The notes under the pieces are model-generated. The model was given only the letters and a program-made list of their open reading frames with translations, was not told where the DNA came from and made no database searches. A stretch of 64,000 nt of DNA from Octopus bimaculoides (taxonomy: Eukaryota). The position numbers and the translations under genes were made by a program. This document shows, one piece after another, positions 8,331-59,426 of this stretch; positions within the stretch are counted from its first letter, which is position 1; each line of letters starts with the position of its first letter. The DNA lies in the NCBI RefSeq assembly GCF_001194135.2, contig NC_068998.1, forward strand, positions 39,743,085 through 39,807,084. Reading direction: 5' to 3'.

Positions 8331-8712
8331 TCATCAACATTATTATCATAGGCCATGAATGACCATGGAATTACACTTACAAAGTTACCCTCTGAAGTAC
8401 ATATATACAAGTATGCACACACACATACACTCACCACACCACACAGGAAGAGTAAGAGAGGATATAGGTTTCTAGATTCAATTACACCACATATTAAGTT
8501 ATATTACTTTAAATTTCCTACTATTGAACACATTAGCTAAGTTCCTGCGTAAACAATGCCTTCGTGATGTATTTGAAAAACAAATCTTTGCCTCTTGCAA
8601 ACACACACACACATACAGAAAGACAGGGAAGACAGAACTATAAAAATTAACACTACTTTTGTTTCAATTAACCTTGAAAATAATACAGAATTTAGTCAAC
8701 AGCCATTATTAA

Positions 8713-8936
8713 GGCAGTGAGCTGGCAGAATCATTAGCATGCTGGAGAAAATGCTGAGTGATGTTTCATCTGTCTTTACATTCTGAGTTCAAATGCCACC
8801 AAGGTTGACTTTGCTTTCATCCTTTTGGAGTTGATGAAATAAATACCAGTTGAGCATTGGGGGGGGGGGGGTCAGTCTAATCGACTATCCCCCTTCCACA
8901 AAATTTCAGGCCTTGTTGCCTATAGTAGAAAAGATT
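8713..8936 (+). mobile_element. SINE family A copy
   Basis: GGCAGTGAGCTGGCAGAATCATTAGC...GAGTTCAAATGCC...AGGCCTTGTTGCCTATAGTAGAAAAGATT. Confidence 0.8.
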
Positions 8937-9536
8937 GTTAAGATGGTGTTTGAAATTATAATATGAAATTTTCATGGAATGTTTTAAGTTTAGATCACTT
9001 GAAAGCAGGAAGTTTGTATCTTAGAACTAGGGGTGGTCTCAAGGGGGTTGGTATCAAAAGGGTCAAGAAATAAACACTGAGAGAGCAGAAGTTGACAACA
9101 GCTAAGCTAGGTGAGAAAATAATGTCAGTAGCTGTGCCACCTGATATCAACCAGTGAGGACAGTTAAGTAGGTAAATTACGCCACCACTACCACTGCCAC
9201 AGTCAGTAGTCAGATGGAAATCAGGTGGAGAACTATGATGGAAGGTGATGTAGGAAAGTTGATAGCACAGCAATGAAACAGCAGGAGCAGTCATGGGGGT
9301 ATAGCAGAGAGACTATGTCAATATAATTTTGTTAAAGTAGGGTGATACTGTGTGAGTGTGTGTATATATTACTCTGTCTGTGTGTGTGTGGAGGGGGAGG
9401 GCCAATACACAGCAGTTCAATTTTAAGTACGTACATTTTTTTCACACTGGGTCATTTAGTAATCAGGTGTCACCTGGCTAAAATAATGTAGAGGACAAAA
9501 TACATGTGCACCACATGCATACACACATATGTGCAT

Positions 9537-9540
<4 letters not shown>

Positions 9541-9587
<47 letters not shown>

Positions 9588-10018
9588 NNNNNNNNNNNNN
9601 NNNNNNNNNNNNNNNNNNNNNNNNNNNNNNNNNNNNNNNNNNNNNNNNNNNNNNNNNNNNNNNNNNNNNNNNNNNNNNNNNNNNNNNNNNNNNNNNNNNN
9701 NNNNNNNNNNNNNNNNNNNNNNNNNNNNNNNNNNNNNNNNNNNNNNNNNNNNNNNNNNNNNNNNNNNNNNNNNNNNNNNNNNNNNNNNNNNNNNNNNNNN
9801 NNNNNNNNNNNNNNNNNNNNNNNNNNNNNNNNNNNNNNNNNNNNNNNNNNNNNNNNNNNNNNNNNNNNNNNNNNNNNNNNNNNNNNNNNNNNNNNNNNNN
9901 NNNNNNNNNNNNNNNNNNNNNNNNNNNNNNNNNNNNNNNNNNNNNNNNNNNNNNNNNNNNNNNNNNNNNNNNNNNNNNNNNNNNNNNNNNNNNNNGTGTG
10001 TGTGTGTGTGTGTGTGTG
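9541..10018. repeat. (GT)n microsatellite spanning an assembly gap (N 9588-9995)
   Basis: GT repeats on both sides of 408 N. Confidence 0.95.
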
Positions 10019-10572
10019 GGGACTAACAGACAGACAGACATTTATAAACTTTTACAAAGGAAACGTTGGCAATGTCTCTGTAGTTTCAGCTTGCCCACTT
10101 TCAAGTCTGATAAAGTCGCTATTAAGCACTTCTTTGTAAAGGTTGATAAATATGTACTCTTCCAAAATGCTTTGAGTAACCCTTCAGTTATTACTTTTAT
10201 TTATAACTTGGCATAGAAACACTAATATATGTGTAAGCTATGCAGTTAAATAAGAGTAGGTATTTAATGTATTTGAGATATAAATGGAGATGTTCAAATA
10301 TGTTCCTTGGCATCCCTTTTCTATTATTTTTATTATCAGACACTGTGTATCTTGGACTGCATTATTCAATACATCCTTTTGTATTTAAAACGGTAGGGTG
10401 TGATTCAAGAGCTATTTGGTTTCTATTTCCAGCAGGCCAGTAGCCTGGATGCATACATACATAGATACATTCATTTAATTAAAGTATATGTTAATCTCAT
10501 GAAGGGATGGTTTCATCCAAGGAAATTCTGGTTCAATACTTGGTATTTTGGGGGGAATGAACTTCCTTAAGA

Positions 10573-11378: not shown

Positions 11379-12379
11379 TGATGAAGAGGATTGGCCTGCA
11401 AGAGCTCTGTGCCAGTGACATGTGAAAAGCACTTGTGCTGGCTCCACATAAAAGTGCTTGTGCCAATGCCACATTAAAAGCACCCAGCACACACTGTGAA
11501 GTGGTTGGCATCAGGAAGTGCATCCACCCCGTAGAAACAAAACCAAATCAGACTGCAACCTGGTGCAGCTCTCCTGCTTGCCAGCTCTGGTCAAACTGTC
11601 CAACTGATGCCAGTATGGATGTTAAAGGATGATGATATGTATGTATGTATGTATGTATGCATGTGAATATGTTTTCCTAATTGATTGAAATGAAGAATTT
11701 TAAAAATATCTTTCAGACTGACATTGATTACTCAATACATTGAATGTTAAGTCTGTCAGGACATTACATCCTTCAAAAATTCCATGCTTCCCAAAGTTCA
11801 CTAACACTACTCCTGACCTGTTAATGGACCTTTCCCTCTTTGTGACTATATTGACTTTTCTGTCTATTTTTGTGCTTTCATCATCATATTCTGTGTATTA
11901 TGCATGCACTTCTCGCCTTCATTGCTGACTTTATGTGACTTACTTGCTGCTTTCTGTTACCACTTTTAACCTTTCTTGGCAAGCTGTAGTGTATCTGAGC
12001 AGTGTATACAAGTTCGGCTATAGGGTGTAATTTGTGATTTGACAACTTAAGAGGGTTGAATGACTGAGCAGAAGCATTTTTGTTTGCTTGTGGTTCTGTA
12101 TATACAAATAGTCTGAAACATGTCCTCATGGAAGCGACAGTCTCGGCTGCAGTGACTGCATTTGAAGTCACTGTCTGCCAGTGTTGTCTTAGTAATATTT
12201 TTCTTCTCATTCAAATTCTGCTGAGGTCAACTTTGCCTTTCAGCCTTTCAGTGTCAATAAAATAAGTACCAGTTATGCACTGGAATCGATGTAATCAACG
12301 AGCCACCCCCACCCCTGAAATTGCTAAGAGAAAAATTTTTCCAAGGTGGGGTGAAGAATATCAGAAAATTCACATGAGA

Positions 12380-12850
12380 AGGCTTTGTTTCCTCATAACT
12401 TTCAGAAAAATGGATAATTGTTTTTTTCAGTACCGGTTTCGGTCATTTAGACTTTTTGAAATTTTGGAAAAATTAAATGAAAAGTTTTTAAAAGAATATT
12501 TGCATAGTATTCAAATACAAGGGGCATTTTCCTTGTGTCTGCCTGTCTCTGTCTCACTTGTTTTACTCTTGTGGGTTCGAAATTTTCACTTAATTTTTCC
12601 AAAATTTGTTTTCCATACTTACAGTTGAAAAAGTCTCAACCGGTACTGAAATAGTGTAAGAGACAAGAGAATACTCTGGGCTCGCATTAAGCAAGAAGTT
12701 GAAAATTTTGGAGGCCCATGACACTGCATGGACCCTGAATTAAGCATGTGTAAAATTTGAATGAAATCAGTTGGGTAGTTCCCGAATTTTAGGGATTCAC
12801 ACAGAGAGACAGACATTCTCATCTTTATATATATATAGATAGATAGACAG
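12380..12850 (+). mobile_element. Helentron/DINE-1-like non-autonomous element
   Basis: Ends in AAATTTGAATGAAATCAG...CACAGAGAGACAGACATTCTCATCTTTATATATATATAGAT. Its TTTGTTTCCTCATAACTTTCAGAAAAA segment recurs inverted, twice, at 41383-41610. Confidence 0.5.
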
Positions 12851-21441: not shown

Positions 21442-21451
21442 NNNNNNNNNN

Positions 21452-32800: not shown

Positions 32801-32977
32801 ATGGCATCAAATACTTTTCGCAGCCAGGCCATTGCTGCAGTTGTTGTCTCTGTCACAGCTGTCATCAAAGCCATTCCTGAGACTTTGGGAATTAACAAAT
32901 ACAAAGAATTTTTCCAGTTCTATGATGCAACAAAACCAAAACCAATAGACAATGACACCAATGAACTTTTAGAAGAG
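32801..32977 (+). CDS. TMEM177: TMEM177 coding exon 1 (59 codons)
   Basis: Acceptor TTTCAG ends at 32773; ATG at 32801; MASNTFRSQAIAAVVVSVTAVIKAIPETLGINKYKEFFQFYDATKPKPIDNDTNELLEE; phase-0 donor GAG|GTAGGT at 32978 joins in frame to 34083. Confidence 0.88.
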
Positions 32978-33180
32978 GTAGGTTTCTCTGTAAGACATGC
33001 AGCCAGGTTCTCTTCCTCTTCTTTTCTTCTTCCTCCACTCACTCCCCTTCCCCTCCTCTTTTTCTTATTGAGTCAAAAAAGTAAAACACCAGTCAATTAC
33101 TGGGATCACTAATTGTCCACTCTCTCTCTTTACAAAAATTACTGGCCTTGTGCCTATAATAAAAAAAGAAGAGGATTATT

Positions 33181-33750
33181 GTTGTTATTTTATTGTCTTT
33201 GCACAACCTCTAATGCTGGAGATGTACTATGGTATGAGCTGTTCACTACCACTGAACTAAGATAACACCCTTTAGTTTTCAAGCACCATCCAGAGTTTTC
33301 AAGCGATTCCAAGCAGTGCTGTTTTCTGCAATTGCTCCAACCTTATTGCAGCCCCTATTTGTTCCAGGTACTTCTCAAGATTTTTACTCACTGTTCCTGG
33401 GGCTCCAATAATTATTGGTACTACAACCACCTTTTTCAGCAACCACAACTGCTTAACCTCCCAAGCTAACCTGTCAAATCTATCAACTTTTCTTTCTTCT
33501 TTATCATATACCCTGTTGTCAGCTGGGCATGCTATGTCTCTGACCCAGCATCGTTTGCTTTCTTTCTCAATTAACACTATGTCTGGTTTCCTTTTCCCTC
33601 TCATGGTCACACTGGATCATAAAATCCCATGGGATATTTGCATTATCATATTCAATGATGCCTTTGGGTTTATGTTCATACCACTTTTTTGCTCTGTCAA
33701 GTCCTTACTTGTTGCAAAGTGTCCAATGGACAATCCTTGCTATGTTGTGT
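33181..33750 (-). mobile_element. 3' end of an RLE-type non-LTR retrotransposon (R4/Dong-like) in the TMEM177 coding intron
   Basis: HNIARIVHWTLC...WYEHKP...PWDFMIQCD then KPDIVLIEKESKRCWVRDIACP...VVPIIIGAPG...LQKTALLG, the PD..D restriction-like endonuclease signature; short AAT/AAC-type tail near 33181. Confidence 0.85.
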
Positions 33751-33774
33751 CTATAGTAGAAAGGTATCTAAAGA

Positions 33775-33985
33775 TGGCAAGCTGGCAGAATCTTTAGCAT
33801 GCCAGGCAAAATCTTAGGGCATTTTGTCTGTCTTTACATTCTGTGTTCAAATTCTGCCGAGTTCAACATTGCCTTTCATCTTTTCGGCGTCAATAAAATA
33901 AGTACCAGTTGAGTACTGGGTCAATGTGATTTACTAGCACCCATCCCCAAAATTGTAAGCCTTGTGCTTATAATAGAAACAGTTA
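33775..33985 (+). mobile_element. SINE family A copy about 100 bp upstream of the TMEM177 exon 2 acceptor
   Basis: GGCAAGCTGGCAGAATCTTTAGC...GTTCAAATTCTGCCGAG...ATT-repeat tail. Confidence 0.8.
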
Positions 33986-34082
33986 TTATTATTATCATTA
34001 TTATTATTTTGTTCAAATGTTTTATTGTTGTTGTTTTTTGGCATTTATTCAATGTTCTTATTTTTCTTCTTTGTCTTTACAG

Positions 34083-34826
34083 ACACTTTTCAAAATAAAC
34101 CTTGATCCTCAATTGGAGAGCAGACTTGAAATGTTTGTTAACTATGGCCAGGACATCATACACAAAGGTAGTTTACACATGAAGAGTGGTGCCATAATCG
34201 GCCTCCCGATCTTCTTCAGCTACAAAGAATTGTCAGACATCCATACAGCACACCTAAAACTGAAAAACAAATCTATTGATTGGAATACTGAAAATGGACA
34301 GAAATTTTCAAATTCTATAATTATGAGCAACAAAGCTAAAAAGTTTGCTATTGCACGAGAAATTCATTATGTTGCAGACCACAACATCGCCATTGAGTGC
34401 GGTCTATTGGTGTTCAACATGAGTGCTGTTTATTGTGCTTATTTTGCAATGGATGGCCTTTATCGCCTCAATCAAAAGATGAAGTTGTTTGGCAAGGTTT
34501 TCTTGGCTAGTTCCTTCTACCTTATGGCCTTAGGAAGCTACTTATTTATGTATGATATTTACCAGCGCCGGAGAGACCGGCATGCCGATTCAAAAGCTGC
34601 AAAATTAGGGAAGGATTATATTGAAGGAGGAATAGAATTTTATAACTTGTTGCTGCAAAGAAATGCAGCATTGTATGCTTTGCTTGGTGAAGATGGCAAG
34701 AAAATTTACACACCATTTGGCAACACAAAGATTTCTGTTCGAATGAAATCTCTACCAATAACTGCTCGAAGAGATTTTATGAAAGAAATTCTTGCTAAAG
34801 AATCAGAGGAGAAACTGCAGAGTTGA
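34083..34826 (+). CDS. TMEM177: TMEM177 coding exon 2 (terminal); full protein 306 aa, mitochondrial inner-membrane family
   Basis: Polypyrimidine tract and CAG acceptor ending at 34082. Motifs GAIIGLP, IDWNTENG, AKKFAIAREI, YIEGGIEFY, NAALYALLGEDGKKIYTPFGN and LPITARRD match the TMEM177 family (human AQKFALAREV, GGVEFYEKLL, LLGKDGEKLYTPSGN, LPYTTRRD). Confidence 0.93.
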   Translation, partial: TLFKINLDPQLESRLEMFVNYGQDIIHKGSLHMKSGAIIGLPIFFSYKELSDIHTAHLKLKNKSIDWNTENGQKFSNSIIMSNKAKKFAIAREIHYVADHNIAIECGLLVFNMSAVYCAYFAMDGLYRLNQKMKLFGKVFLASSFYLMALGSYLFMYDIYQRRRDRHADSKAAKLGKDYIEGGIEFYNLLLQRNAALYALLGEDGKKIYTPFGNTKISVRMKSLPITARRDFMKEILAKESEEKLQS

Positions 34827-36313: not shown

Positions 36314-37624
36314 TGCTTGTAACTATATATTGTAGCAGTGTTGCTACAATATACAATACACATGCAATGTTTCATAATTGTAAACAATACAGTGTATACA
36401 CTAACCATAAGATGCCTTGGGGCTAAGTCTTCAATATCTTCATTTTCATAAGTTTGCATTAGTTTTTTTCTTATCCTCAAATGCTAGGCTATCTCATTTC
36501 CCCCCAGTTTGACCATGGTTATTTTTAAGAGTGGAACCCAAAGTAGACGAAAGTATAAAGAATAGCTTATAAGATATTTTGTTAAAAAACTCACTGGATA
36601 GAAAATGTTGAAGGGTATCCTTCAACTTTTTCTATTATCCAAGGGTTTTATTTTTAACCTAATATCCTTCATACTTTTATTTATGGCTTTACCTATTTCA
36701 AATTCCACTGTTAAGAATAATTTACTTCATATCTCTCAAAATTACTAAGTTCATATAATGTTAAACATGTTTATCTTATACAGGAGGCATTGTATTTAAT
36801 AAAATATCTTGTAATCTGAAGTTCTTTAATGCAAAATTAATTTTCCTATTGATTCCATGTATATGGAAGTCAAACAAAAGATATGTTTTGCATTATGGAA
36901 CACCTGCTTATGCAAAATTTTCATAAATGCAACATTTCTGCTCTACTGGGAATCCTGGAATTAAATTTCTCACATAAATAGATATGTTAGGTCATCTAAC
37001 AAGCAAAAGATATGTGGTCCTGTTTCTTGTTTGTGTTTATAATGAAAAAAACTATGGAAGCCATACTGGTGATGAATAAGGCAGGAGAGAGGTACATGTT
37101 GCTGTTAATAGGCATTTCCATCACCATTAAGTTGTTTGAAGTGGGTACAATATGATGGTAGTTAGAACCAGAACCAGAAGTATTATGTTTCTTGGGTATT
37201 GAACACTATTTCCAAAGATTGGGATATTCCCCAAGGGAGAGAAAGAGAGAGATTGAAGTATCTGGTGCAAGTTGGAGGGTGTATTATTTCAAGATAATAG
37301 AGCATTGTCAGGGCAGGTATCCTTGTTGGTTTGAAATGACTGAAGTTATTTTCATACTTGGCATGTATGTATATATGGTGGTGAGTTTGATGGAATGGAG
37401 ATTTCCCTTGTGTGTAGTGTGGAGCATGATGTATAGCAAGCGACAAATGGGAGAACTTCTTATAAAACCATCATCATTAAGAAAGTGGGGAAAGGTAAAT
37501 TCCACAAAGTTAACAGAGATCCTTTGTGCAAGTGACCAAAAGAAGGATCAACTGTAGTTTGGAAGATGGGAATACTTGTGGATTACCTAATGTAAAGAGT
37601 CATTCTTCATGGGTGACTGGATAA

Positions 37625-37860
37625 CTAAAATAAGATATAGAATAATAAGAGTGAAAAGGAAAATTTCAGTGCCAGAATGTCAAATTTTCCTTTTGAAGCT
37701 CTATTGCAAAGATTTTCTAAACAAAAGCAATAGAATTTAGGTTCCTCAACAGTTGGAATTTGGCTAATATTGCGACATCCTTCTTGGTAATTTATATCTA
37801 AAAGATCGAAGTACTGTTCCTGTTCAGAAGTGACACATCTGCGATCAGCTTTAAAAGGAT
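37625..37860 (-). CDS. Ly6/uPAR three-finger gene, exon 3 (second half of LU domain plus GPI signal)
   Basis: Acceptor TTATTATTTTCAG; phase-1 entry gives (D)PFKADRRCVTSEQEQYFDLLDINYQEGCRNISQIPTVEEPKFYCFCLENLCNRASKGKFDILALKFSFSLLLFYILF then TAG at 37627-37625. CxCxxxxCN closing motif and a hydrophobic C-terminal tail. Confidence 0.88.
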
Positions 37861-38048
37861 CTGAAAATAATAATAAAAGTAATCAAGCTTGTAAAGAAAT
37901 GTTATCCAATTAGTTAAATTATATTTCAGTCAATATGTGAATATATATCTCAACATGTCGTAACCTTGACTACAGAGAGAGACAAAAGATAAAGTTAATC
38001 TTAACAGGATTTGAACTGAAAATGTAATGATCTGGAGCAAAAACTGCT

Positions 38049-38263
38049 TTAACCCTTCAGCATTTAAACTGGCCCTATCTGGCCAAAACATTTTATCTGC
38101 TTTATGTTCAAATCAACTAGATGTGTCCTCTCATACCTACACTATGGTCTTATTCTAAAAATAAACAATCACATCATTAAAATCTCAAAGCTATGAGATA
38201 ATGCATGATTAATTCAAAACAATGTGAATAAAGAAGCATTACTTCTGAATGCTAAAGGGTAAA
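38049..38263. mobile_element. piggyBac-type MITE in intron 2 of the Ly6 gene
   Basis: TTAA-CCCTTCAGCATT ... AATGCTAAAGGG-TAAA. A partial copy of a similar end (AAATGCTAATGGGTTAA) lies at 13640-13737. Confidence 0.65.
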
Positions 38264-38373
38264 TCATTCACCAGGATACCAGGAATGAAATTCTGGGAGA
38301 GAAAGTTGATTAAATGAACTTCAGAACTTGATCCTGAAGAGATAAGTGGGATTTGGACTCCCAATATAAGTTA

Positions 38374-39633
38374 TTAGGTTGTCCAGAAAGTTCTGAGCGT
38401 TTTTGAGCTAAATCTTTTAACTCTTCATTGAACACACCTGAAATATAACAGTTAAAACATTAGTGTTGCTTGAAGTGGTAGTGCATCTCTTCTTTGTTCC
38501 TGATTAAAAATTGATTTATCTTTCATTCCGGTTACCCTTTATTGACATTTGAAATGGATAACCAAAAACTTCATATTCGCTTTGTAATGCTTTTCTTTTT
38601 TAAAAAAGGAGAAAATACTGCAAAGGCTTGCAAAACCATTTGTGAAGTTTATGGTGGTAGTGCTGTAGGTGAATCAACTGTTCAAAGATGGTATGTAAAA
38701 TTTTAAGCTGTAGAGTTTAGCTTGGAAGATGACAGTCACAGAGGAAGACCTTCAAAATTGGATGAAGATGTTTTGAAGGCAAAAATCGAAGAAAACTCAA
38801 ATGTCATGACTAAAGAACTTACAAAAGAGTTGAAGGTTTCTAAAAATGCAGCTCATGAACACCTAGTGAAGCTAGGATACATTTCTTGCTATAATGTATG
38901 GGTCCCTCAAACTCAGAAAAGAATTGCTTGGACTGGTTTTCCATTTATGATATGCTTTTGAAACAGAATGCAAGCATGCCTTTTTTGAAACAATTTGTGA
39001 CTGAAAATGAAAAATGGATTGTGTACAAAAACGTAGGGTAAAAAAGATCCTGGAGTTTGTGTAAGGATCCCCCAAAACAGCAACCAAAGATGAAAAGCCA
39101 TGCTTTGTGTCTGGTGGGATTATAAAGGCATTATTTATTATGAGCTCTCACAAAACCAGACCATTAATTCTGACGTGAACTGTCATCAGCTGACTAATTT
39201 GAACTAAAAAATCAAAGAATTGAGGCCAGAGATTGCCAACGGGAAAGGGGTAGTGTTCCAACAAGACAATGCCTGACCACATGTCTTTGGCTACCCAAAT
39301 AAAGTTACATGAACTTGGTTGGGATCTCTTACCCCATCTACCATATTCTCCTGATATTGCACCATTCAACTACCACTTATTTTTGTCTCTACAGAACTCA
39401 CTGCAAGGAAAAACATTTAATTATTTAGATGGAGTCAAAATGCATCTAGATAACTTTTTTCTTCAAAACCAGTCAAATTTTATGCTGATGGAATATTTAG
39501 ATTGCCTTATAGATGGACAAACGTCATTAATAATAATGGAAATTATTTCATTAAATAAAATTTATTGAAAGGTCAATTATTTACATCCCTTTTTGCATAT
39601 TAAAAAATGCTCAAAACTTTCTTTGAAACCTAA
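38374..39633 (+). mobile_element. Full-length inactivated mariner (DD34D type) in intron 2 of the Ly6 gene
   Basis: TIRs TTAGGTTGTCCAGAAAGTTCTGAGC / GCTCAAAACTTTCTTTGAAACCTAA, TA TSD. Transposase from ATG 38554 with GRP, WVP, LCVWWD, QQDNA and YSPDIAP motifs, broken by stops and frameshifts. Confidence 0.92.
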
Positions 39634-40286
39634 TACAACAACTGCAAGGCATTTTGCCCAATACTCTAACAATTTTGCCACTCCTCTTCCACAAACAGAT
39701 TGATCTAAGAATGCTATCAAAAAGAAACAAAAAAAAAAGCACCAAAACAAAAAAATGTATCATTATCATCATCATCATCTTAATGTAGGTATAGACCTAG
39801 CCATGTGATTAAAAAATTGGTTTCACAATCACTTGATCCTACTGTATAAGATACCTTATGTGTCTTATACCATAACATTGAATCAACTATATAATATTGC
39901 TTACAATATTGATATGGGAAGACAGAAACTGGAAAGACTTGCTTGTCAGTTAATTGGCTATGACCATTTGAGCATGTCCTTTAATGGCTGACAATTTCTG
40001 CATCTCTGATCATGAGCAGGAGTAGTGGGGGAGCATCAAAGCAATGTATTGAGAAGGATTCTTTGGGGTTCGAATAAATGTAACAAAAGCAGAGTTTGAA
40101 GGAAATATTAGCCATTTTTCATACTTTCTAGGGGTAAGCAAATAGAAAATAACAGTTGCTACCCAAGGACAAAAATCGTATTTGTGTATTGCTTAATATC
40201 CACTCTGAAATAAATGGAGTCTGTCCACACACCAGAAAGAAAAGAGAATAATATATGAAACTTAGAAAAGATCTTCAATGTCTTAC

Positions 40287-40403
40287 CACTATAATCCACT
40301 GTTGTTTGACATTTATTGCAGCCAGAGACAACACTGTACTTGTCAATGGTGAAGTTTAGCAAATATGAACAACGGTGACACGCATAACAATTGATGTTGA
40401 CCA
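40287..40403 (-). CDS. Ly6/uPAR three-finger gene, exon 2
   Basis: Acceptor TTCTTCCTATATTTCAG; 117-nt phase 1-1 exon encoding (L)VNINCYACHRCSYLLNFTIDKYSVVSGCNKCQTTVDYS; donor G|GTAAGA at 40286. Confidence 0.85.
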
Positions 40404-40842
40404 CTGAAATATAGGAAGAAACATGAGAATGATCAGGCAATGTAGAGTATTGGATATAGATTCAGTGACACTATCTATTCATGTCAGGAAAAAATACTAG
40501 GTAACTTTGAATGTATTTCAACATTATTCTGACCTCATCATTAAAGTATAGTCTTCTCCATACTTGCTACAAAAAAGTGATGAATGAATTTAATATTAGG
40601 AAACTAGAAATTTATTATGTTGTGAAGCAAAAAATAAAACTTATTAATCAATAACTAATAGTTTTCTGTTTATGAAGTTTTAAATATGGGAAGACATCTC
40701 TCGAACTTTTTCTGGCCCCCCATTGAAGTAAATCACCAACCCAGTATTTTCCATGGTAGTTACCAAAGAATCACTATATAAATACAATTATACATTTATT
40801 TATGTGTAGGAAAAATATGATCATTTGGAGGTTAAAACTCAC

Positions 40843-40882
40843 AAACACTAGCCACTATACAAGAAAATAATAGCTTAGTCAT
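40843..40882 (-). CDS. Ly6/uPAR three-finger gene, exon 1 (signal peptide)
   Basis: ATG at 40882 gives MTKLLFSCIVASV plus one base (T), then a GTGAGT donor at 40842. The phase-1 junction makes TTG (Leu) with exon 2. An upstream in-frame ATG at 40921 is also possible. Confidence 0.65.
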
Positions 40883-42032
40883 AATATAATTAATGCATGG
40901 AGCATAAAAAAAAATAAACATGGTGGAAAAAATTTTCATTAGCCCTTTTGATGCTAACACATCTGAGACTACTGGTTCTTTGATACAAACTTCTTGTTTT
41001 AAAAAGCATTTAATTAAAACATTCCATCAAATTTTCATTTCATGTTCCAAACACCAGTTTAATAAAGACAAACTAAAGTCTTAATTATTTTCAAAATTAA
41101 TTCAAACTAAGGCAATGTAATTCAGCTGAAATATGGTAATAACTGTGTTAATCAATGTCAGGTTTTATTTTCATAGTTCCAGCAAATACAGAAGTATCTA
41201 GACATGTTTTGGACTTATACTGACCTCTGCAGAGAAATGCAGCTAAAAATCTAATATATATCTATAAAATAAAACTTGAAATTTTAAAAGAATTGCATGA
41301 TGTGCCTCAGTAAATATATGTGCAGTATCTGTTTTATTATTTTTCTAATTAAACTCCAATATAATCATAATCTACACCGTCTGAAAGGTATTTGTAGAAA
41401 ATTTCATGACCAAATACCAATTTTTCTGAAAGTTATGAGGAAACAAATTCAACTCGTGTGAATTATCTGAAACTCTCACCTACCTACCCTAGGGAAAAAA
41501 TTTCACAACAAATTCTGATATAATTGGAATTCACACCATATGAAAGGTATTTGTAGAAAATTTAATTATAAAACACCAATTTTTCTGAAAGACGTGAGGA
41601 AGCAAAGTTAAAGGATACACTCGTGTAGCTATGTCGAAAATAGGATATCATTTTGAAGGAATTTAGTAATTATTTCTAACAGGTCAAATAGTCGCTGAAA
41701 GACTCTTGCATGCCAGCAAAATTAGCCGACACTTGGAAGTCCTAATCAACGTTTCTTTTGTAAAAATTAGTAAATACTGCTAAATTAGTAAACACTGCTA
41801 AAAAAAGGATTGAATAATCCTTTAAGTTTAATGTTAAGATTGTTTTTTGTATGCAATTTGACATAAAATCAGACACTTATATAATATATATTATACAAGA
41901 ATTTTATTCGAACGAATTAATATTAGTATTTCTTTTTCTTAAGCTTTTGACGAATTGCTAAGTTACGGGGACATAAGCACACCAATACCGATTTTCAAGA
42001 GGCAGTGGGATACACGTGTGTGTGTGTGTGTA

Positions 42033-42935
42033 TAGGTGAGGGGGTAAAATGGGGTGTTTTTATGTATTTTTGACTTTGAGACAAAATATATTTTTTTACA
42101 AATGTTCACTACCTTACAAAAACTATATCAGCTAAGCAAATGACCTTCTCTAAATGCATTAAAAATACTGTCACACATTCAGAGCATTATTTCAGAAAAC
42201 TGTCAGTTCCCTTTGAGAATATAAAAGACAAATTTAGCTGGGGTAAAATGAGTAGACCAAGATAAGGTAAATTTTTGCCTCTTCAATTCTCCAGAATTAC
42301 ATTTGGAAACAGACTCTTGTACAACACTGTCCATCAGAATGATGAGAATTGTAACAAAAAATTTAAATATCCAGGTCAAATGACAGAGGATCATGGTAAA
42401 ACAGCACATGATACGAAATTAACAAGAATCAGCTAAATCAGAAAAGTCAAAATATTCTCTATGGTTTCTTCACTAACTGCTGGAATAGCTGTTCCCGACA
42501 TATTTACGAACCATGAAGAGAAACAATTATTTAAAATAGTCATTACTCATTTTACCCCATTTTAGACATTTTTTTTCTTTAAAAAAATAAATTGAAAATT
42601 ATGAAATTAGGCATTAGGGGGGTGGGGACAAATGACTTAGAATCCAACAGAGAAAAGAATATTGATTGTTAAATACCAAAAATTATCCAGATATTTTGTT
42701 AGTAACCTCAATTACGATTGGGTCAAAGCTGAAAAAAATTTCTTGAAAAAAAAAAAGTACCTGTCACCTGACTATGTTCCAAATTCTCTCAGCTTTAACA
42801 ATAACAACTGTGCTGACTAATTTTTACTCGTAAAGATGATGCAGCAGTACAAAGTTATGATGCAGGACTTGCAATTTCAAACAGGTAAGGAGAAAATAAC
42901 GAAATCAGAAATTACTCATTTTACCCCGCTTACTA
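42033..42935. mobile_element. Putative DNA transposon remnant with terminal and internal copies of GGGGTAAAATG(AGTA)
   Basis: Forward copies at about 42041 and 42240; reverse copies TACTCATTTTACCCC at 42544 and 42913. Family not assignable with certainty (pogo-like possible). Confidence 0.5.
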
Positions 42936-43450
42936 ATTTTGCACCCCCTTCGATTTATTATACATACACGCACACATATATATACAAATAATTATATATT
43001 AGATATATAATATGATACATATTATATATAAATAATATATATTAAGTATAAAGAGAGAGAATGATTGCTATGCGTGCATAGGACTGTGTATATATTATAC
43101 GCACCATAATTTATTTTACTGTAAAGAAAACAGGAGATAATAAAAAATCTAACAAAAGCAGCCATATAAACAGTATAAAAGAAAAAAATTCCAAACACTA
43201 GGATTTCCGGTGGTTACTGTTTCATTCGTTATTTATGTTGCTGTAAGCTGCAGTCTTGTAATAGTTCCGTGATATTTTATGGTTAACTTACTCTATATCG
43301 TTTATTTTTAATTAAGCGCTATATACCTTAATTGCCATGACAATTATCTAACTTCCGGCCAGGTGAATCAATGTTTTTTACCTTACTGATCTGATTATAA
43401 ACAATACCAACAACAACTCAGTTTTCATCGACCTTATTCAAGTTTATGCT

Positions 43451-43489
<39 letters not shown>

Positions 43490-43491
<2 letters not shown>

Positions 43492-48740: not shown

Positions 48741-51700
48741 GTAAGTTGATATTTATTTGTTTCATTCTTTAATTGTTCTTCAATTTGTACTGAGTAATAA
48801 TTACTTGACTTTTTTTTAGCTGTGAATTATTTCATCTGATATCAATGTCAGACGACACTTGTAGCAATCTGGCAAAGTGTCGTCTGACATAGATTTACTA
48901 AAATTTGTTACCCGAATCTTGCTTCAGACTATTTTTGTATATGCAAGTATTTTATTGGCCCAGTCTCTAATTGTGTAGAATCTATCATTCATTTGCTCTT
49001 TATTTCTTTTTTTTTTCCTTTTTAAAACACAACAAAAGTATATAAACCTTATTTATAATTTTTACATCATCACGACGTCGAAGACTAAATCTTTACCCTT
49101 TTGTGCTGCTTTCCTGGCAAAAAAATCTCTCTTTACCCTTTTCTTAACTTTAACTGTAATTAGGTTTCGTCTGGTTGTTACCAGACGAAACTTAATTACA
49201 GTTAACAAAACAAAAATTTATCAAACGCACAACAATAACAGATTGTTATGTCAGAATACGAAAATATTCGTAATCCTTTTCTCTGAAACCATAGGAATTT
49301 ATCGAGCGAACAAGAAAATGGGGCTCAGCGAATCCTTTGACCTGTGAGAAATAGCAACCAAATTCTTTAAATGACACCCTATTTTTTTGAGGAAAAAAAA
49401 AAGGAAAGATGCATTGGAGAATGTAGAACCTGTAGCAAGAACAACTTTTAATAACATGAAGGTGCTCCTTTCGGGGTGTCCATAAAACAAGCACTAGTTG
49501 AGCACTGGGGTCAGTGTAATCGACTTACCCTCTCCCCCGAAATTGTGCCAAAATTTTAAATTAATATGTCGGTGCTCATCAACTTAAAGGGTTTCCAGAA
49601 GAATCATGGGGAGGTAATCAATCAGGCTCTATATAACTAAAATAGCCTTTCCTCCCCCTATACTTTTTGTAAATCACGGGGTTTGTGTTGGTTAAAAGGA
49701 ATTGTATATATTCAAATATACTGCTTTAAAATAAAATCTTGGAGCACAATAAAATTAATAAAGGTTAATATTTACAAGTACACCGGCACGAAAATTCGAC
49801 CTTTTAAAAAAAAAATTTTTTTTTCTTAAATAATGATTAAAGAAAGGTTGATAATTAAAGACGGCTAAAGTACATTAAAAATCTAAAATATTTAGTATCA
49901 TTTTCCAAATTGTTTTTCTCTTCTTACAGACAACAATCGGCATGTGTTTATATGTGAACAATACTTAATTAGTTTTAACTGTTAACTAGGAAAAAATATT
50001 GTGTGGCATGTAAGCAATTACTTATCAAGTGATTTGGATGAATTCATCTGATGTAAATTACAGAAAAAGTTATACCCCGATCTGTTTATGTAACCGTATT
50101 CCATAAGTTGATGGAATTAAATACTCTAGCTACTAAATTACAAGAAAAAAACAACCAATCTGTTTATTAAACTATAAATTATGTTTATGAACAATTTTTT
50201 CTTCTGATAACATTTATGTGTATTTTGTATACATAAAGTTTGATCGAAGAGAAATTTCTAAATTTCTCGTCCGATTCTAAAGGTTTTTTTTCTTTCTTTT
50301 ATTCAAAGAATTGGCTGCATCGCAATTATCACACCTTGTCTTGTCTACTGATCCTATCAGTGGATGCGTACCCACCCATATGCTTGGACAGAGTTGACTG
50401 GGGCTAGATAACATGTTTAGAATGAGAGAGAGAGAGAGGATGAGGATGAGGATGAGGAGTTATAGTACAATACTACATGGAAGCTATAATAAAATTGGAT
50501 ATATTACAATGTCTAGTTTCCTAAGATTATTCTTGTTAGTTCAGACTACAATCTTGGGGGCCAAATAAAATACATACTGACAGCCAAGCCTATGCGGTCG
50601 TTTGACTTGTTAGATATTACAATCATATCTGAGTCGATTTCACAAAGAATAAATTTCTCTATTGGTCTGGAAACCAGAATCAATCTCATCAAACGTCTCT
50701 TATATAATAGTTTGATATTTGGTCAAAAGAAATACCCCTCCCCCTCTCTCTCTCTCTATCTATCTATATGTGTGTGTGTAATAAGCATATATTAGTTATG
50801 CTGTTATTGTTTAGCCCCTGGTCAGCCCTGATCTGGAAGAGTTGTAAATCATACTAAGAACTACTATCTGGATGAGTGGATGTGATAGATAAAATATATG
50901 GCAGCAATAGCAACAGAATCTCATTAAAATCACACCCTACTAACTGTGAATGCATAAAAAAACCTCCCAGAAAATACTTTAGAGAATCTGCTGTCCCAGA
51001 TCAAAAAAATACTAGATGGTCATGGCTGGAATGCCATTGATAATCCTATGTAATCATAATGTTCACATGAAGCTTAGGAACAACATTTATAAGTAGTAGT
51101 GCTGTAAATTGATGTATTGAATTACAGAGGCATCAATAAGTGGAACTGTTCAGTGTTAAGGAATTTCTCAATAGAGAATGTAGAAGCATATTTAATGAAT
51201 CAATGAGAGAGCTCTGTACTTTTGGCAGGCATTCCTATTAGAGATAACTGCTAAGTCTCCCTCAAATTAAACCCTACTGTCTTGAAAAGAGAGGGACACA
51301 TTGCACAATGCTGTCCCATATCCGAGAGAAGAATGAGATGGGCATAGCTGGAGTGTCTTTGATCATGGGTCTGCTCAGTCTAAGCCTGCTCTTAGGCTAA
51401 ACAATGACAATAGTAACTTGTTCATTTATGAGATGACAAGGTTGCCTGTTTTAGATTACTTAAACTGCACAGTATAATGGTGAAGTATACTTCTTTACCA
51501 TATAGCTATACCTGTTCCCAATATTATGTATTCTTTGCATTAATATCTATTAATTTCATCCAACTCTTCATTTAACAGCAGTTGGCTGGTTATATTGTGT
51601 AAAATAAAAACATTTTTAAATGCTGGTATATGGAGGGCATTGTGAATGAAAGGTGTCAACCAATGATGAAGGGGTTTTTCTATTATTCTCAAACGCCTAG

Positions 51701-59352: not shown

Positions 59353-59426
59353 NNNNNNNNNNNNNNNNNNNNNNNNNNNNNNNNNNNNNNNNNNNNNNNN
59401 NNNATATGTATGTATTTATGTATATG

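Follow-up and report, generated by a model that had tools for sequence, protein, structure and literature searches.

LOC106883152 of Octopus bimaculoides, an annotated gene that probably encodes a Ly6/QVR-like protein

The window analysed here is the whole stretch of 64,000 nucleotides (nt) of Octopus bimaculoides DNA from assembly GCF_001194135.2 (contig NC_068998.1, positions 39,743,085 to 39,807,084 of the forward strand), and all positions are given in its coordinates. On its minus strand lies a three-exon gene that is very probably the annotated O. bimaculoides gene LOC106883152, a Ly6/QVR-like gene with its start codon at position 43165. An original prediction, made from the DNA letters, had placed a hidden gene of the Ly6/uPAR type here, with the coding sequence (CDS) join(40882-40843, 40403-40287, 37860-37625) on the minus strand. 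Direct reading reproduced this join, which is 393 nt long with GT-AG introns, both of them in phase 1 (donors GTGAGT and GTAAGA; both acceptors ending in TTTCAG). Its product of 130 amino acids (aa), which runs MTKLLFSCIVASVLVNINCYACHRC...CFCLENLCNRASKGKFDILALKFSFSLLLFYILF, was confirmed as MTKLLFSCIVASVLVNINCY...CFCLENLCN...LLLFYILF, in which the hydrophobic stretch at the N-terminus is followed by 10 Cys. The predicted sequons NFT and NIS are present, and so is the hydrophobic tail with its hydrophobic run at the end. It had also been said correctly that the list of open reading frames (ORFs) shows exon 2 alone (inside ORF 40159-40440). However, the gene is not hidden, because it is annotated in RefSeq and in the O. 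vulgaris annotation and carries the UniProt name 'Protein quiver'. The prediction recognised a Ly6-type gene correctly, but its first exon and its premise that the gene was hidden are wrong.

A search with the 130-aa product returned one cluster, with 99% identity over 90% of the query. Its members are XP_014789546.1 of O. bimaculoides (uncharacterized protein LOC106883152, the same as UniProt A0A0L8FIE1, whose quiver name is automatic), CAI9735691.1 of O. vulgaris and XP_029646070.1 of O. sinensis; the annotation comes from RefSeq for O. bimaculoides and O. sinensis, and from the O. vulgaris annotation for the third species. The 90% cluster, with NCBI nr included, consists of three proteins of 137 aa each. 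The gene is ordinary, already publicly annotated but uncharacterised. In the literature searched, we found no paper naming LOC106883152, XP_014789546, A0A0L8FIE1, LOC115219903 or LOC106162295, nor any work on Ly6 proteins of cephalopods or lophotrochozoans. The word 'quiver' in a squid atlas paper is the name of a software and not of a gene.

Exons 2 and 3 as originally proposed agree exactly with the CDS annotated for XP_014789546.1. The gene spans 37625-43165 in three coding exons, and not 37625-40882, and the part from 37625 to 43165 agrees base for base with CM046618.1 of GCA_001194135.2 (Table 1). The annotated exon 1 codes for MAAFVRFFIISCFLYSKINY and the first base of Val21, that is, for the signal peptide, and it matches residues 1-20 of XP_014789546.1 exactly; the annotated 137-aa proteins start with MAAFVRFFIISCFLYSKINYV. 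An in-frame stop is found 51 nt upstream of this ATG. The product of exon 2 is VNINCYACHRCSYLLNFTIDKYSVVSGCNKCQTTVDYS, which holds Cys1-5 and the NFT sequon, and exon 3 supplies Cys6-10, the NIS sequon, CFCLENLCN and then the 25-residue C-terminal tail RASKGKFDILALKFSFSLLLFYILF. Downstream of exon 3, the nearest AATAAA/ATTAAA signals are at 36830 and 36800, about 0.8 kb away. The Ly6 layout of the original prediction (signal / phase 1 / half-domain / phase 1 / half-domain with hydrophobic tail, 10 Cys, terminal C-x4-CN) stands, and its first exon was misassigned. Two sequence features were seen upstream of the annotated start codon, namely a TATATAG motif at about 43325 (160 nt upstream) and a (TA)n microsatellite at 43450-43490 (about 300 nt upstream).

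Table 1. Features of the LOC106883152 locus, in window coordinates.
Feature	Start	End	Strand	Length (nt)	Remarks
Exon 1 CDS, annotated and conserved	43105	43165	-	61	ATG at 43165; donor GTGCGT; phase 1
Intron 1	40404	43104	-	2701	Includes the O. bimaculoides-specific, partly repetitive segment 40649-41820
First exon of the original prediction	40843	40882	-		MTKLLFSCIVASV; donor GTGAGT; in intron 1
Exon 2	40287	40403	-	117	Phase 1 at both ends; first half of LU-like domain
Intron 2	37861	40286	-	2426	Splits Asp60 codon; contains decayed mariner/Tc1-like element
Decayed mariner/Tc1-like transposase remnant	38542	39568	+		In intron 2; outside the gene product
Exon 3 CDS	37625	37860	-	236	Includes TAG stop at 37625-37627; second domain half and tail

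We compared the locus with its counterparts in two other octopuses. The orthologues of O. vulgaris and O. sinensis are 93% identical at the protein level, and the alignment of the orthologous loci showed that both species keep the start codon ATG, the two donors and two acceptors, and the stop. Nucleotide identity across the octopuses is 95-97% in exon 1, compared with about 87% in its flanks, and the pairwise ratio of nonsynonymous to synonymous substitution rates (dN/dS) among the three species is 0.13-0.23. The gene is under purifying selection, real and constrained. A pseudogene was rejected because the ORF is intact in three species and because of these dN/dS values. The conservation of orthologous exons in related species holds for exons 2 and 3 of the original prediction, which are intact in O. 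vulgaris and O. sinensis, and fails for its exon 1, which has no counterpart there. A tblastn search of the window for paralogues returned none, so that there is no local Ly6 cluster.

More distant relatives were sought with phmmer in an exhaustive search of 1.84 billion protein representatives. Two genuine relatives were found, Lingula anatina LOC106162295 (135 aa, 34% identity, E = 1e-4) and the Logan genomic contig SRR29346471_267893; the remaining matches (P0004, P0006 and P0007) are repeat-protein artefacts. All 10 Cys align between Octopus and Lingula. We mapped the Lingula gene (LFEI02000131.1, 6001-7799 of the extracted locus) and found three coding exons with introns at equivalent places relative to Cys1 and Cys5. 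Because Lingula has a similar distal signal exon (61-64 nt in the two genes), the annotated octopus exon 1 is independently supported. The Logan contig (run SRR29346471) carries at about 200-480 an exon-3 homologue with the same phase-1 acceptor and 42% identity, reading DSEFCDRLCVTS...CFCSSQLCNDASRET..., in which all five exon-3 Cys are kept. The database protein of this contig (P0005) reads TGA as Trp, and its length of 195 aa is accordingly a gene-calling artefact. A hydrophobic tail is found in both the Logan contig and Lingula. The Lingula homologue differs from the octopus protein in a shorter loop 1 and in lacking the NFT sequon. Lingula, a brachiopod, belongs to another phylum, and its protein and the Logan product are both uncharacterised. 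A word-indexed search with the Lingula protein alone returned only itself. Judged from these alignments, the gene in all likelihood belongs to a small lophotrochozoan clade made up of Octopus, Lingula and the Logan contig, and this clade would be a divergent relative of the insect QVR branch. Since sequence, Cys and intron positions are common to a mollusc and a brachiopod, a QVR-like Ly6 lineage is older than the split of those phyla.

The features that define a Ly6/uPAR (LU) domain have been reviewed by Leth et al. (2019, PMC6600238). The domain has 60-90 residues and 10 plesiotypic Cys with disulfides 1-5, 2-3, 4-6, 7-8 and 9-10, and a non-glycosylated Asn follows right after Cys10. It is encoded by three exons with phase-1 introns, of which the first carries the signal peptide and the other two the mature domain, with the glycosylphosphatidylinositol (GPI) signal in exon 3 and the domain-splitting intron at the tip of loop 2 (PMC6600238). 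In the octopus gene, the three exons have 61, 117 and 236 nt and in Lingula 64, 102 and 242 nt, with phase 1 at both introns in each. The ten Cys (C26, 29, 32, 49, 52, 68, 88, 104, 106 and 111, within 86 residues) are kept in the three octopuses and in Lingula. Cys10 is followed by Asn in the context C111-N112-R-A, which forms no N-x-S/T sequon and is invariant in all homologues. The second intron splits the codon of D60, eight residues from C52 and eight from C68, and its Lingula equivalent lies likewise. As judged from the gene and protein sequence, every LU structural feature that can be tested in this way is found in the octopus gene, and curated sequence models are not matched. These features are shared with the vertebrate Ly6/uPAR prototoxins (Lynx1, Ly6H, CD59 and LYPD6) and the snake three-finger toxins, which also have three exons with phase-1 introns, a loop-2 splitting intron, 10 plesiotypic Cys and Asn after Cys10 (PMC6600238).

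Here, we explored the relation to the insect Quiver/Sleepless (QVR/SSS) proteins, which define the Pfam family QVR (PF17064). They were retrieved by a word-indexed search with an alignment, to which a mature Drosophila QVR sequence was added as bait. The search returned 291 proteins, among them the octopus and Lingula proteins and at least 118 insect QVR orthologues that carry PF17064. The bait is consistent with the N57 and N127 numbering of PMC4735452, and our conclusions rest on the returned database proteins alone. A profile of the Octopus and Lingula proteins, containing no QVR row, was then compared by hhalign with 24 insect QVRs. The result was a probability of 92.7% (E = 4.2e-7) for an alignment of 79 columns that extends over the whole PF17064 region. 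The real score was 43.1, compared with maxima of 23.1 in 60 full column shuffles and 20.5 in 60 shuffles with the Cys fixed, and the latter comparison led us to reject the view that the signal reflects mere Cys composition or framework. With a hidden Markov model (HMM) built from QVR only, Lingula scored 15.9 bits and the Logan contig peptide 14.7 bits, compared with a maximum of 7.5 over 400 shuffles. Lingula thus scores above the octopus proteins against insect QVR and is a useful bridge sequence.

Two points limit this relation. The octopus sequences alone reached 2-9 bits against the QVR-only HMM, within the shuffle range, and because Lingula reached 15.9 bits the QVR link is one of profile level, transitive through Lingula. 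Moreover, the profile comparison sampled QVR orthologues only, and hence does not imply that QVR is the closest Ly6 subfamily. Within these bounds, profile-profile comparison and the Lingula intermediate show that the octopus gene is detectably related to the insect Quiver/Sleepless Ly6/uPAR family. Like insect QVR/SSS, it would have a single domain of the LU type, with a signal peptide before it and a hydrophobic tail after it. Three motifs of the joint alignment are in register with insect QVR, namely the CY-x-C start, R-R-(x)-C-T at Cys6 and the CFC-x-E-x-(L/M)-CN end, and so is the N-x-T sequon of loop 1 with the N57 glycosylation site of QVR (PMC4735452). However, identity to insect QVR is about 25%, QVR has more Cys than the 10 of the octopus domain (an N-terminal C and CNGCC), and loop 1 is shorter by 8 residues and the Cys7-Cys8 region longer by 9-10. 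The gene is one more divergent Ly6/QVR-like protein, present in RefSeq and UniProt and uncaptured by current Pfam models. A modest residual interest lies in the fact that a QVR-like lineage common to molluscs and brachiopods escapes the Pfam model.

The topology of the protein may be considered from its hydropathy. The Kyte-Doolittle values are 2.4 at the N-terminus and 2.6 at the C-terminus, compared with a maximum of 1.2 inside the domain, and in the tail after CN the small residues N112, A114, S115 and G117 precede the hydrophobic run, which makes a candidate GPI-attachment signal. The product would be a protein of the secretory pathway, with a signal peptide from exon 1, a 10-Cys LU domain of about 87 residues from exons 2 and 3 and, at the C-terminus, a hydrophobic propeptide. 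On the model of QVR/SSS and Lynx1, the signal peptide would be cleaved on the secretory route. The domain may then form five disulfides (1-5, 2-3, 4-6, 7-8 and 9-10) and a three-finger fold, and could be N-glycosylated at N37, which is the position in register with QVR N57, and perhaps at N90. The tail would be cut off and a GPI anchor attached at or just after the Asn, Ala or Ser following Cys10.

QVR/SSS is GPI-anchored and N-glycosylated, and its loop 2 binds Shaker and the nicotinic acetylcholine receptor (PMC4735452, PMC10264074). On the analogy of QVR/SSS and Lynx1, the octopus protein might act in cis from the outer leaflet of the membrane, as an accessory subunit whose loop 2 would make most of the contact with the extracellular face of an ion channel or receptor. 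The surface level and gating of its target could be tuned in this way, and the candidates would be a Shaker-type K+ channel or a nicotinic-type pentameric receptor. A role as channel or receptor modulator is thus conceivable, and we put it forward tentatively, as an idea of somewhat less than even standing. If it is true of octopus neurons or suckers, the gene would give a handle on cephalopod excitability and on cholinergic or chemotactile signalling. The link to chemotactile receptors is itself a speculative idea, drawn by inference only.

The gene may also encode an LU protein with a structural, developmental or other surface role, for instance at a septate junction or barrier as for Boudin and Coiled, or as an immune or receptor protein as for CD59 and LYPD6. 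LYPD6 is a Wnt co-receptor, and a Wnt or complement-type function at the cell surface would be of this kind. We consider such a role unlikely, with a good deal still speaking for it. LU functions are very diverse and the target cannot be predicted from sequence (PMC6600238), and the Drosophila Ly6 proteins Boudin and Coiled work in septate junctions. The top matches of one structure model, which are non-significant, are LYPD6 and LYPD6B, and the restriction of the profile comparison to QVR orthologues leaves room for this role too. However, QVR is the sole family found to be related at the profile level here, among QVR orthologues as the only ones sampled, and the CFC-x4-CN end and the glycosylation site in loop 1 line up with it. 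The automatic rule of UniProt also gives the quiver name. Such points are based on sequence and not on function.

A wider reading is that the Octopus and Lingula proteins are lophotrochozoan orthologues of Quiver/Sleepless. QVR would then be an ancient accessory subunit of protostomes. In cephalopods, K+ channels of the Shaker type and pentameric receptors of the nicotinic type would be tuned by it, perhaps with the sucker chemotactile receptors, which derive from nicotinic receptors, among them. The subunit would lie beyond the PF17064 model and so be invisible to Pfam surveys. We regard this reading as improbable.

Other results weigh against membership of the LU domain family itself. The original prediction had suggested a check against the Pfam models QVR, UPAR_LY6 and Toxin_TOLIP, and neither these nor any other model of the LU clan matched at E <= 10. 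The scans took in the 130-aa model, XP_014789546.1, an octopus orthologue (P0002), the Logan protein (P0005) and the Lingula protein (P0008), and gave noise only (UPF0515, DUF6487 and DUF3817). In the same scan, insect QVR reached 42 bits on PF17064 as a positive control. The octopus protein, unlike insect QVR, gave no reported PF17064 match and thus did not reach the gathering threshold (27.3 bits). PDB sequences were searched with three queries (the protein by itself, a profile of the family, and that profile extended by QVR), and nothing significant came back; the weak matches include CD177 (E = 1) and ribosomal proteins of the zinc-ribbon type (E of about 0.05-0.09). CD177 is a multi-LU protein. 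This absence of Pfam UPAR_LY6, Toxin_TOLIP and PDB sequence matches sets the octopus protein apart from the vertebrate prototoxins and toxins. It also differs from them in its Cys spacing, since Cys8 and Cys9 form C-x-C instead of the usual CC and C4-x2-C5 is short. The Cys6-Cys7 segment has 19 residues, which is long for an LU domain, and is predicted to be helical.

The structure models add little. AlphaFold2 gave pLDDT values (its predicted confidence scores) of 55.1 with a 4-sequence multiple sequence alignment and 53.9 with a 28-sequence alignment, which means low confidence. In both models (pLDDT about 54), residues 51-106 include four beta-strands, and residues 71-79 form a helix. A Foldseek search of the PDB with both low-confidence models found nothing at E < 0.1. 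Among the non-significant matches of model 1, LYPD6 (6gbi and 6ib6) and LYPD6B (6zso) hold ranks 1, 2 and 4, and the weak matches repeatedly include TGF-beta-receptor ectodomains, cardiotoxin, calciseptine and MT7. A likeness to LYPD6, LYPD6B, cardiotoxin and MT7 may be seen in this, and the presence of LU/three-finger structures among the weak matches is suggestive at most.

On these grounds, the protein could be seen as an unrelated small Cys-rich secreted or membrane protein whose likeness to Ly6 has arisen by convergence. The missing Pfam and PDB matches, the atypical Cys spacing and models too poor to display a fold all agree with this view. However, the hhalign score lies 10 standard deviations above the Cys-fixed shuffles, which implies that non-Cys residues in register contribute, and the Lingula intermediate stands out against the QVR-only HMM. 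The phase and position of the introns fit the LU definition exactly, and C-x-C also occurs in bona fide QVR. Convergence is therefore very unlikely in our view, and we keep to an LU-type protein of the Ly6/QVR-like kind.

It might finally be argued that an alternative isoform is transcribed from within intron 1, with 40882-40843 as its first exon, 130 aa and another signal peptide, but we give this hardly any credence. The proposed exon does have an ORF, a strong GTGAGT donor and phase 1, MTKLLFSCIVASV is plausible as a signal-peptide core (Kyte-Doolittle 2.83), and the protein collection keeps just the longest product per gene. Against this, the proposed exon lies in a 1.17-kb segment, partly of dispersed repeats, that neither O. 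vulgaris nor O. sinensis has, and in-frame ATGs occur upstream in the same ORF at 40939 and 40921. The 90% cluster carries no isoform label, and the N-terminus MTKLLFSCIVASV was found in no database protein. Moreover, three annotations and the Lingula gene all use the distal exon 1.

The frequency of such exons by chance was estimated as a control. We collected all ATG-initiated stop-free stretches of 31-100 nt that end at a phase-1 GT in the 5.6 kb upstream of exon 2, where the G+C content is 36%. Of the 34 candidate first exons obtained, 18 have a hydrophobic 8-mer; the annotated exon and the proposed one are both included. Because 18 comparable hydrophobic candidates occur in 5.6 kb, the proposed exon is what AT-rich sequence gives by chance. 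In the segment 41820-40649 that holds it, nothing alignable was found in O. vulgaris or O. sinensis, even with a word size of 7. The proposed exon and its signal peptide are not conserved and no better than chance, and we rejected them as a conserved start for these two reasons, the lack of an orthologous counterpart of the DNA and the chance frequency. It is most likely a chance intronic ATG...GT candidate outside the gene. The annotated first exon of the Ly6/QVR-like gene is thus preferred. For scans of this kind, chance ATG...GT 'signal-peptide exons' are easily found in AT-rich cephalopod introns, so that first exons need comparative or RNA support.

The introns contain repeats. The O. bimaculoides-specific segment 40649-41820 (1.17 kb, in intron 1) is replaced by 172 unrelated bp in O. 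sinensis and by about 590 bp in O. vulgaris. It has an internal direct duplication of 97 bp (41606-41510 and 41447-41351) and pieces that resemble 8645-9062, 12332-12420 and 49325-49385 of the window, and it is probably repeat-derived. The transposase remnant in intron 2 consists of ORF fragments, including a 'YSPDIAPFNYHLF' motif, with a weak match to PF01710 HTH_Tnp_IS630 (E = 0.0036). Neither O. vulgaris nor O. sinensis has its 5' part (38053-39093), whereas all three octopuses share its 3' part.

Elsewhere in the window, N runs that mark assembly gaps lie at 9588-9995, 21442-21451 and 59353-59403. Several long ORFs listed at 9478-10216 cross the first of these gaps (9588-9995) and are artefacts. 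Two genes flank the locus, and their synteny is kept across the three octopuses. From about 48678 upward on the plus strand lies a gene of the TMEM9 family (PF05434, 215 aa). The other, at about 32801-34826 on the plus strand, codes for 306 aa without a Pfam match, and its last exon is the 269-aa ORF at 34017-34826.

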